A stretch of 63,358 nt of DNA, counting the filler, from Olpidium bornovanus S191 (Eukaryota > Fungi > Olpidiomycota), in NCBI GenBank assembly GCA_017911155.1. It is 32 parts of 32 records of this genome, joined end to end, with 100 filler letters (N's around TTAATTAATTAA, not from the genome) between each part and the next. Parts side by side here need not be neighbours in the genome. Positions count along the whole stretch, not along the records: positions 60,900 to 63,358 come from JAEFCI010008647.1; 31 more parts are not named here. One strand, written 5' to 3'. Below, piece by piece: positions 60,800-63,358 of this stretch. The translations under genes and the position numbers were made by a program. Position 1 is the stretch's first letter; each line of letters begins with the position of its first letter. The notes beneath the pieces are model-generated. The model was not told the origin of the DNA, searched no databases, and was given only the letters and a program-made list of their open reading frames with translations.

Positions 60800-60960
60800 N
60801 NNNNNNNNNNNNNNNNNNNNNNNNNNNNNNNNNNNNNNNNNNNTTAATTAATTAANNNNNNNNNNNNNNNNNNNNNNNNNNNNNNNNNNNNNNNNNNNNG
60901 AAGAGGGAAAAAGTCTTACATTGCTGTCACCCGGACCACCCTGGTTGCGGTCGAACACAG

Positions 60961-62738
60961 TTGTTGATGCTCGCGTGGAAGTGGGGCCCGGCCCTCGCCG
61001 CCGGCAACACCATTGTCATGAAAACCTCTGAAAAGACCCCCCTTACTGCGTTGTACGTATGCCGCCTTGCCGCCGAAGCCGGCTTCCCGGCCGGCGTAAT
61101 AAACGGTAAGAAACCACACGGCTGTGACACGTTCAGAAACGGAATGTACTCGCTGTTGTTTTGGGTTGAGATTCGCCTGTTATGCCCGGGGACGGATTGT
61201 TTTCGCTGTTACTTTGGATTGAATTCTGCCTGTCACAGCGGAAGCGGAGCGTTTTTTGCTGTTACCTTTGGATTAAAATTCGCATGTCACACCGGGACGG
61301 AATGTTTTTGTTGTTACTTTGAATTTCGCCTTTGCACGGTTTTAAACCAGTGCTATCCGGCTTTGGACCCACTGCGGGAAACGCCGTGAGCTCCCACATG
61401 GACATCAGGAAGGTCGCTTTCACGGGGTCTACCAGGGCCGGCAAACAAGTCATGGCCGCCGCGGCATCCTCCAACCTGAAGAAGGTCTCTTTAGAGCTTG
61501 GCGGGAAAAGCCCTTCCATCGTGTTTGCGGATGCGGATCTCGACCGGGCGGTCAGATCGACGTCCATGGGCATCTTCTTCAATCACGGGCAATGCTGCTG
61601 CGCGGGATCCCGGGTATTCGTGCACGAGGATATTTACGACGAGTTTGTGCGGCGCTTCCGTGAGCATGCGCGGGACATCCGTGTCGGCGACCAGCTCGAC
61701 GACTCTACCGATCACGGACCGCTGGTCGACGGGATCCAGTTTCATCGCGTCATGGGCTACATTGAAAAGGTTCTGGTCCCCCTCACCCAACCCCTTTTTT
61801 CCCAACCTGCAGATCGTGGATTCGTCTCATCCATGGCCATTCCGCTAACTTTTTTTTGCTTTGCTTTGCAATTCTTCCTCCGTTATTTTTGGTTCAAAGG
61901 GCAAGGACGAAGGCGCCACTGTTGAGATCGGCGGCGAGCGCGTTGGCGCCGAGGGATACTTCGTGCCGCCGACGGTCTTCTCCAGCGTCGACGACGAGAT
62001 GACCATTGCGCAGGAAGAGATTTTTGGTCCGGTTGCTTGCTTACTCAAGTTCAAAACCGAGGACGAGGTCGTAAAGCGCGCCAACGCCACCGAATACGGC
62101 CTCGCCGCGTCCGTCCACACCAATGACGTCAAGCTCGCTTCCCGCATGGCCGCTCGACTCGAGGCCGGGACCGTCTGGATCAACTGGTTAGTTATCCCCC
62201 GCGATAAAGACAATTTCGGGTTAGGCGTCCGTCCCTTTTCTTCGAACACGAAAGTGACATCGGCTTCTGGTCGTTCCCTCTTGAACGCCGGCCGAAACAA
62301 ATTCTATTTTGTCAGCCACGCAAGTGCCGCCCTTTAATTGCGTCCGTTTTGCAAAACGTGAAAGGAACCTGTCTCACATTTTGGAGTTCCTTGCTGCTTC
62401 CTTCCGTCTTTCAGAATGGTACGTGTGATATGATTTCATTGCACTTGTTTGGCGTAGATGTGATCTCTCTCCGTGACGACGGCGCGACGACATATGTTTG
62501 ATTAAATGATCCAACGTAAAATTTGCGGACAATAGTACTCAGCGAGCAGGTTCCGTTCGGAGGATTCAAGCAGTCTGGCTCTGGCCGCGAGCTTGGAGAG
62601 GAAGGCCTTTACGAGTACACGGAAGTCAAGTCGGTGATCATGGTGAGTTGTGCTTGACATGTACTTTTTGTCCCCACCCGCTCCTCTTACGCCTGTCATT
62701 TCGATGAATTAACCGGCTTGACGCAGAACCTGGAGTAG
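60961..62738 (+). CDS. Aldehyde dehydrogenase (Ald4/5, ALDH2-like), 5' truncated, with two 4-nt microexons
   Basis: [73 protein letters not shown]|NLE-stop. Confidence 0.96.
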
Positions 62739-63358
62739 GCGGAAGGTGCACCCAAAGGTCGCGTGTACAATTTTTTTTTTGGTTTCTGCCCCTCAAAAAA
62801 AATGAAAAGAAAATTACCAAGGGAAGCGGGAGGGGGGAAGCATTGCTGCCCCATTCGCGCGGTGACTCCTCCCAGAACTCTATCCCCTAAATTCTCAGTG
62901 TGATTCTTGGATATTTTTTTTTAGCCGGTCATCACCGGCGGAAGATTTCGAGTCCTCCCAAGCGAAGCGCGCGTCCTGCGAATTGGTATAACTATTTGAA
63001 GTGCGCGATTTCTGAACGACGGACGTGGAACCAAAGGAGACAAAGGAAGACGAGTGCACAATGGAGGGACCAAGGATGGAGGGCGGAGAAGGCGGACGGC
63101 GGGGACGCCGGAGACTGCACTGCGCAGTTCGGAACGCTGTTGAGTTTCTACAGGCTTTTCGGTTTGTTTTGTGTGGCGTCGGCGTGCGGGATTTACAGGG
63201 GGAAGAAAGGAGGGATGATTCCCGCAGGAGTCTGCGCTACCGGCTACGTCCGACCCCCTTTCCCTCTTTTTTCCAACAGGATGATAGGGGGGAGAGAGAG
63301 CGAGGCTTGTGTGCGCCGCTTGGAGCGAGGCATGGTCTGGACCGAATAAACATCGACA

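Follow-up and report, generated by a model that had tools for sequence, protein, structure and literature searches.

Tiny microexons and their misannotation are already known from fungi and plants. In Coprinopsis cinerea, long-read annotation recovered 1,165 genes in which an internal exon measures 15 nt or less and 89 in which an exon measures 3 nt or less; these microexons are often frame-critical and overlooked by gene predictors (PMC12230235). Plant microexons of 1-15 nt are pervasively misannotated and can be predicted from the homology of the flanking coding sequence; they include an adjacent pair (5 nt and 12 nt) in rice, which was confirmed by RT-PCR (PMC8831610). GT-AG introns make up 98.7% of fungal introns, GC-AG introns being the main non-canonical class (PMC7072748). 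Here, we describe an aldehyde dehydrogenase (ALDH) gene of Olpidium bornovanus which, with little doubt on our part, contains two back-to-back 4-nt exons, CCAC and AATG, the first of them placed before a GC-AG intron. The pair resembles the C. cinerea microexons: in both cases an intron-rich fungus has constitutive coding exons only a few nucleotides long, whose omission breaks the frame and which predictors miss, the Olpidium case being known from the genomic sequence and from contigs of a homologue. C. cinerea belongs, however, to the Agaricomycetes, whereas in Olpidium (Olpidiomycota) two 4-nt exons adjoin each other, three introns fall within 12 coding nucleotides and one of these introns is GC-AG. 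With plant microexons the pair shares misannotation, predictability from flanking homology and occurrence next to one another, but most plant microexons are of ancient origin and kept throughout the land plants, whereas of the three Olpidium intron positions a single one recurred elsewhere (in Gonapodya). Thus, the Olpidium pair is an extreme but ordinary case; particular to it are the Olpidiomycota lineage, the direct adjacency of two 4-nt exons and the GC donor that follows the first.

The gene lies in the last part of the window (the whole 63,358-nt stretch of DNA that was analysed), at positions 60900-63358, which are the entire 2459-nt O. bornovanus contig JAEFCI010008647.1. The + strand carries an ALDH1/2-type aldehyde dehydrogenase gene from which the 5' third, situated beyond the contig, is missing, leaving the C-terminal two thirds of the protein. 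Our seven-exon model yields a 978-nt coding sequence and a 325-residue product, and comprises the following features (transcript contigs are those of a close homologue, introduced below):

60900-60960, + strand: 3' end of an upstream intron (...acacag)
60961-61105, + strand: first ALDH exon inside the contig, LLMLAWKW...GVIN, ending in phase 1; the next junction is contiguous in transcript contig L008
61106-61350, + strand: intron of 245 nt, GTAAGA...CCAG, holding a tandem repeat of about 53 nt
61351-61769, + strand: ALDH exon with the catalytic motifs (LELGGKSP and the Cys motif), within the uninterrupted Pfam Aldedh match
61770-61899, + strand: intron of 130 nt with a weak donor, GTTCTG...CAAAG; junction contiguous in the transcript contigs
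61900-62186, + strand: ALDH exon ending ...GTVWIN plus TG, phase 2
62187-62315, + strand: intron of 129 nt, GTTAGT...TTTTGTCAG; acceptor with 9 of 11 pyrimidines, then CAG
62316-62319, + strand: microexon 1, CCAC, which finishes Cys (TG+C) and gives His (CAC); identical bases in the transcript contigs
62320-62414, + strand: GC-AG intron of 95 nt, GCAAGT...CTTTCAG; acceptor with 10 of 11 pyrimidines, then CAG
62415-62418, + strand: microexon 2, AATG, which encodes Asn (AAT) and supplies the opening base of the Val codon; identical bases in the transcript contigs
62419-62535, + strand: intron of 117 nt, GTACGT...CAATAG, phase 1 in the Val codon
62536-62642, + strand: ALDH exon starting TA CTC AGC; contiguous junctions in the transcript contigs
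62643-62726, + strand: last intron, 84 nt, GTGAGT...ACGCAG; absent from the deposited annotation, the transcript contigs ending ...VMNLE and stop
62727-62738, + strand: terminal coding exon, NLE and the stop codon, followed by the 3' UTR (about 81% match to L008)

The model protein matches Pfam Aldedh (PF00171) with 451.7 bits (cut-off 23) over profile positions 140-461 of 461 in one unbroken stretch, and both catalytic motifs, ELGGKSP (Glu) and GQCCCAGSR (Cys), are intact, the matching columns being invariant in the homologue alignment. The G+C content is 0.43-0.50 in the introns of the model vs. 0.60 in its exons. In its full Pfam match, catalytic motifs, C-terminal motif and 60-71% identity to chytrid and other fungal ALDHs, the protein resembles fungal ALDH1/2-type enzymes (yeast Ald4/Ald5-like), but it has His in place of the usual Tyr in the C-Y-N triplet. 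The locus is best explained as a functional, intron-rich gene for an ALDH1/2-type aldehyde dehydrogenase, of which the activity and the NAD+ cofactor are predicted. Its best database match was KAG5458329.1 ('MAG: mitochondrial Aldh2 [Olpidium bornovanus]', 339 aa), which is placed on the 2459-nt contig and is therefore the contig's own deposited annotation. Removing one intron only, 62254-62549 (GTGACA...GAGCAG), and reading through the last intron reproduced this protein exactly. It misses both microexons and the last intron: 23 unrelated residues replace CHNVLSEQ, the C-terminus reads ...VIMVSCA (...VIMNLE in our model and ...VMNLE in the homologue's transcript contigs), and the Pfam score, 430.3 bits, is 21 bits lower than that of the model. 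The deposited annotation was produced with MAKER using SNAP, GeneMark and Augustus, of which SNAP and Augustus ran on Rhizopus oryzae parameters. A first-pass annotation of this DNA had expected predictors to miss the microexons and to call a pseudogene; they did miss them, but what was deposited is a wrong intron and a wrong protein rather than a pseudogene. The public record can now be corrected for its 23 spurious residues and wrong C-terminus. Moreover, the case indicates that Rhizopus-trained predictors mis-handle intron-dense Olpidium genes, which matters since the proteome serves deep fungal phylogenomics.

At the microexon cluster, the codons for Cys-His-Asn-Val, straight after GTVWIN, are split by short introns of the U2 type, a GT-AG intron of 129 nt, a GC-AG intron of 95 nt and a GT-AG intron of 117 nt, so that three introns interrupt 12 coding nucleotides. 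Removal of all three gives ...ATCAAC TGC CAC AAT GTA CTC... and the product WINCHNVL within a full-length enzyme. Re-reading the sequence confirmed the coordinates, flanking hexamers and intron lengths given for the cluster in the first-pass annotation, including the end of exon 61900-62186 (...TGG ATC AAC TG/gttagt) and the start of the next large exon (TA CTC AGC at 62536, after caatag). As it had also claimed, a direct join of 62186 to 62536 does not fit: without the microexons the frame shifts, and with both of them the nine-residue spacing from W[VIT]N to PFGG and the C-H-N-V residues are regained. The two units read ttgtcag/CCAC/gcaagt and ctttcag/AATG/gtacgt, i.e., internal coding exons within the microexon limit of at most 15 nt, each with an AG acceptor before it and a GT or GC donor after it, in a gene with other spliceosomal introns. 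Intron 62320-62414 has the make-up of a U2-type GC-AG intron, running from GCAAGT to TTTCAG, without motifs of the U12 type at donor or branch. GC donors usually read GCAAGT, and the AAGT consensus at +3 to +6 is typical for GC-AG introns. Like such introns, the Olpidium one begins with GC at +1/+2, continues with AAGT and ends in a normal AG acceptor; unlike them, it follows a 4-nt exon, leaving only three exon bases (CAC) for upstream pairing, and the usual G at -1 is absent.

Transcript-level evidence for this structure comes from a close homologue. The 90% cluster of KAG5458329.1 has one other member, a 525-aa protein (P0241), whose ORF runs uninterrupted on contigs of 1706-1772 nt in four sequencing runs (SRR10938831, -33, -35 and -36; contigs L008-L011). 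Each contig extends beyond the ORF by a short 5' leader (46-47 nt) and by a 3' trailer, and the four coding sequences are identical. From their size, their ends and their colinearity with an intron-containing gene we infer that these contigs are mRNA assemblies. The 978-nt coding sequence of our model aligns to that of P0241 without gaps and with 93.7% identity; 43 of the 62 differences fall at third codon positions, and the codon differences comprise 43 synonymous and 16 non-synonymous ones. The NG86 estimates over the 325 codons are dN 0.023, dS 0.225 and dN/dS 0.10; the window copy has been under purifying selection. All six junctions of the model are contiguous in the four contigs. At the microexon site the contigs read ATCAACTG-CCAC-AATG-TACTTTGC, vs. 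ATCAACTG-CCAC-AATG-TACTCAGC in the model; the stretch CCACAATG is identical between them, all eight microexon bases match, and the His of C-H-N is likewise present in the transcribed relative. Among the donors of the interval, only GCAAGT gives the mRNA that is found in this 94%-identical relative, and the 3' UTRs of the window gene and of the transcript contigs match at about 81%. A close relative or paralogue, 6% diverged, thus appears to express an mRNA exactly as the two-microexon model predicts for the window locus. The gapless alignment upholds the central proposal of the first-pass annotation, that two consecutive 4-nt exons, one with a GC donor, are needed to restore both the frame and C-(Y/H)-N, and none of the outcomes it had named as contrary (other exons, a single 8-nt exon, no in-frame product) occurs in the homologue's transcript contigs. 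Exact searches of JGI metagenome contigs gave 0 matches for the expected 24-nt spliced junction of the locus itself, ATCAACTGCCACAATGTACTCAGC, and 0 matches for the exon-intron boundary GGRACCGTCTGGATCAACTGGT, which was used to look for a second genomic copy. Additionally, a 99-aa C-terminal protein query for transcript fragments gave no match above 72% identity, and apart from P0241 the searches returned no protein fragments at least 90% identical to the model.

The two-microexon path can also be ranked against every other way of splicing the interval. Between 62150 and 62570, every path was enumerated that contains one, two or three GT/GC-AG introns, none shorter than 40 nt, and keeps the frame open; the paths were scored with an HMM of 27 homologues. 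Among the 11,520 stop-free in-frame paths, which encode 11,507 distinct products, the two-microexon path ranks first (224.2 bits). The margins between paths are small because few residues differ, and splice signals were therefore assessed separately. The interval contains 43 GT/GC and 10 AG dinucleotides; its three best donor matches are those of the model, GTTAGT (62187), GCAAGT (62320) and GTACGT (62419), GCAAGT being the best of all apart from the C at +2. The acceptors ending at 62315 (9/11 pyrimidines) and 62414 (10/11) are the most pyrimidine-rich internal AGs and the only two preceded by C, and twice in the interval a model acceptor and a model donor pair 4 nt apart. Neither intron 62187-62315 nor intron 62320-62414 has a strict YTRAY branch motif in its final 60 nt. 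In dinucleotide-preserving shuffles, C-[YH]-N-[VLI] arose by way of one or two microexons with bare AG...GY flanks in 41 of 20,000 cases. Only 72 of 100,000 shuffles held at least two microexon candidates no longer than 8 nt whose flanks equalled the real ones in strength; the thresholds of this second test were set after the real sites had been seen, which somewhat favours the model, and the margin over chance is still large. Among homologues, the spacing from W[VIT]N to PFGG is nine residues in all 231 in which both motifs could be located, and the triplet at the C-Y-N site is CYN in 160 of these, CYD in 29 and CHN in 7.

Of the other readings of the locus, the one that fares best keeps both microexons and attributes the C of the GC donor (62321) to polymorphism or to a mistake in sequencing or assembly, so that the intron would truly be GT-AG. 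We regard this as improbable: the sequence holds no hint of error, and GCAAGT is just what a GC donor usually looks like. The assembly is, however, a fragmented short-read metagenome assembly, and the prevalence of GT-AG among fungal introns speaks for a true GT, as the standing of GC-AG as the commonest non-canonical class speaks against it (PMC7072748). Still less credit can be given to a decaying pseudogene, or an unproductively spliced locus, in which both 4-mers are chance look-alikes. Such a view could draw on the locus-specific spliced junction being without a match in the metagenome contigs searched, and on the contig being a fragment of a metagenome-assembled genome with the 5' third of the gene outside it. 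Against it stand a dN/dS of 0.10 over 325 codons relative to a transcribed homologue, exons without frameshift or stop, the intact catalytic Cys and Glu motifs, and the shuffle tests, which make chance unlikely.

A single 8-nt microexon, CCACGCAA (62316-62323), with a donor GTGCCG 4 nt inside GCAAGT and a 212-nt intron reaching 62535, would yield WIN-C-H-A-I-LSEQ and the junction CTGCCACGCAATAC, vs. CTGCCACAATGTAC under the two-microexon model. This exon is in frame, needs no non-canonical donor and ranks third of 11,507 by HMM (220.8 vs. 224.2 bits). Nevertheless, GTGCCG fits the consensus at one of the four scored positions, the near-perfect unit ctttcag/AATG/gtacgt would be left unused, Asn would be replaced by Ala (Asn in 189 of 231 homologues, Ala in none), and the contigs of the 94%-identical homologue carry CCACAATG rather than CCACGCAA; we consider this reading even less likely than a pseudogene. 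The deposited model, in which the exon extends to 62253 (retaining the 67 nt of 62187-62253), the intron is 62254-62549 and a lineage-specific insert replaces CHNVLSEQ, is a public annotation from MAKER with Rhizopus-trained predictors and offers an in-frame GT-AG intron, but it is scarcely credible, given that it deletes a segment of invariant length in 231 homologues, scores lower against Pfam, relies on a weak donor (GTGACA) and an acceptor within conserved coding sequence, omits a last intron that is real by the transcript contigs, and introduces an insert absent from the homologous transcripts. The homologue's transcripts rule out the 8-nt exon, the deposited model and a pseudogene for the homologue itself and make all three very unlikely at the window locus.

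How the two 4-nt exons might be spliced follows from a familiar mode of recognition. Where fungal introns are short, splice-site pairing by the spliceosome takes place across the intron, i.e., introns are recognised one by one. The three cluster introns are of ordinary length for this ALDH gene, and each has good 5' and 3' signals of its own. Each would probably be recognised singly, by intron definition, through a 5' splice site, a branch region and a 3' splice site rich in pyrimidines. On this view, the 4-nt exons would be left over between neighbouring, independently recognised introns, with no need for special exon definition. The two introns flanking a microexon would probably be removed stepwise rather than together: with only 4 nt between an acceptor and the donor after it, the bound factors would overlap, and simultaneous assembly on both introns therefore seems unlikely. 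The proposal that the cluster reflects unusually fine exon definition in this lineage is unsupported by the tests made: all introns of the gene are short (84-245 nt), which fits recognition intron by intron, and exons of 1-3 nt are already documented in C. cinerea (PMC12230235) and in plants (PMC8831610). Adjacent 4-nt exons, one of them before a GC donor, nonetheless lie near the lower limit of the spliceosome. They add an example from a zoosporic fungus to those from mushrooms and plants and leave the current understanding of splicing unchanged.

Intron positions were compared in nine orthologue genes, from a Logan relative, Phlyctochytrium, Cladochytrium, Blyttiomyces, Boletus, Batrachochytrium, Gonapodya, Synchytrium and Homalodisca. 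The codons from W-x-N to PFGG are unbroken in the 71%-identical Logan relative (L001), Phlyctochytrium planicorne (L002), Cladochytrium replicatum (L003), Blyttiomyces helicus (L005), Boletus edulis (L006) and Batrachochytrium salamandrivorans (L012). In Gonapodya sp. JEL0774 (L004, 585-686), a phase-1 intron lies in the codon after C-Y-N (AAC TGT TAC AAC G/gtgggt...tttacag/TT TTC), in the position and phase of window intron 62419-62535. Synchytrium microbalum (L013, 2876-3200) has an intron (AAC AT/gtaagc) 1 nt downstream of the position common to Olpidium and Gonapodya. Two small exons come next in S. microbalum, one of 23 nt and one of about 22 nt (the latter with a boundary set by eye), making the gene intron-dense in this part as well. 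A Homalodisca vitripennis contig (L007; 6308-6325, 8450-8540 and a minus-strand paralogue) carries two convergent ALDH paralogues, in both of which an intron interrupts the Trp codon of GTVW in phase 2, seven coding nucleotides upstream of where the Olpidium cluster has its first intron. The positions of introns 62187-62315 (Cys codon) and 62320-62414 (between His and Asn) were found in 0 of the 9 orthologue genes examined. Hence, to the question raised in the first-pass annotation, whether orthologues keep these positions, the answer is yes for 62419-62535 (Gonapodya) and no for the other two in this set. Intron 62419-62535 may be old, or its site may be prone to intron gain, and the other two look lineage-specific. 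Given the position shared with Gonapodya, together with the Synchytrium intron 1 nt away and its small exons, this stretch of ALDH appears intron-prone in early-diverging fungi. The clustered introns share no repeat family that would suggest an introner-like or duplicated origin, and their mean column identity in a forced alignment is 43%; with no sequence similarity among them, the three are not recent copies of one another.

We may speculate, as a doubtful extension of these findings, that introns were acquired at neighbouring sites in the Olpidium lineage and that ultra-short exons are numerous throughout its genome. If true, a considerable part of the published proteome of O. bornovanus, from which the position of Olpidium in the fungal tree was derived, would be mis-predicted, and the lineage would offer a useful system for studying intron gain and the splicing of 4-nt exons.

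Several further observations concern the remainder of the contig. The weak donor GTTCTG (61770-61775) is real, its junction GAAAAG/GGCAAG being contiguous in the transcript contigs; a donor that is real yet poor implies that donor strength alone is a weak guide in this genome. Intron 61106-61350 is about twice as long as the other introns because a tandem repeat (window positions 61136-61325) fills most of it, with a unit of about 53 nt in about 2.6-3.6 copies of 75-88% identity. Past the stop codon, 62739-63358 starts with some 150 nt of 3' UTR that has a homologous counterpart in the transcript contigs and continues with G+C-rich sequence, within which short GGACGGCGG-type repeats lie at 63078-63115; a 149-codon ORF occupies 62900-63349 on the + strand.
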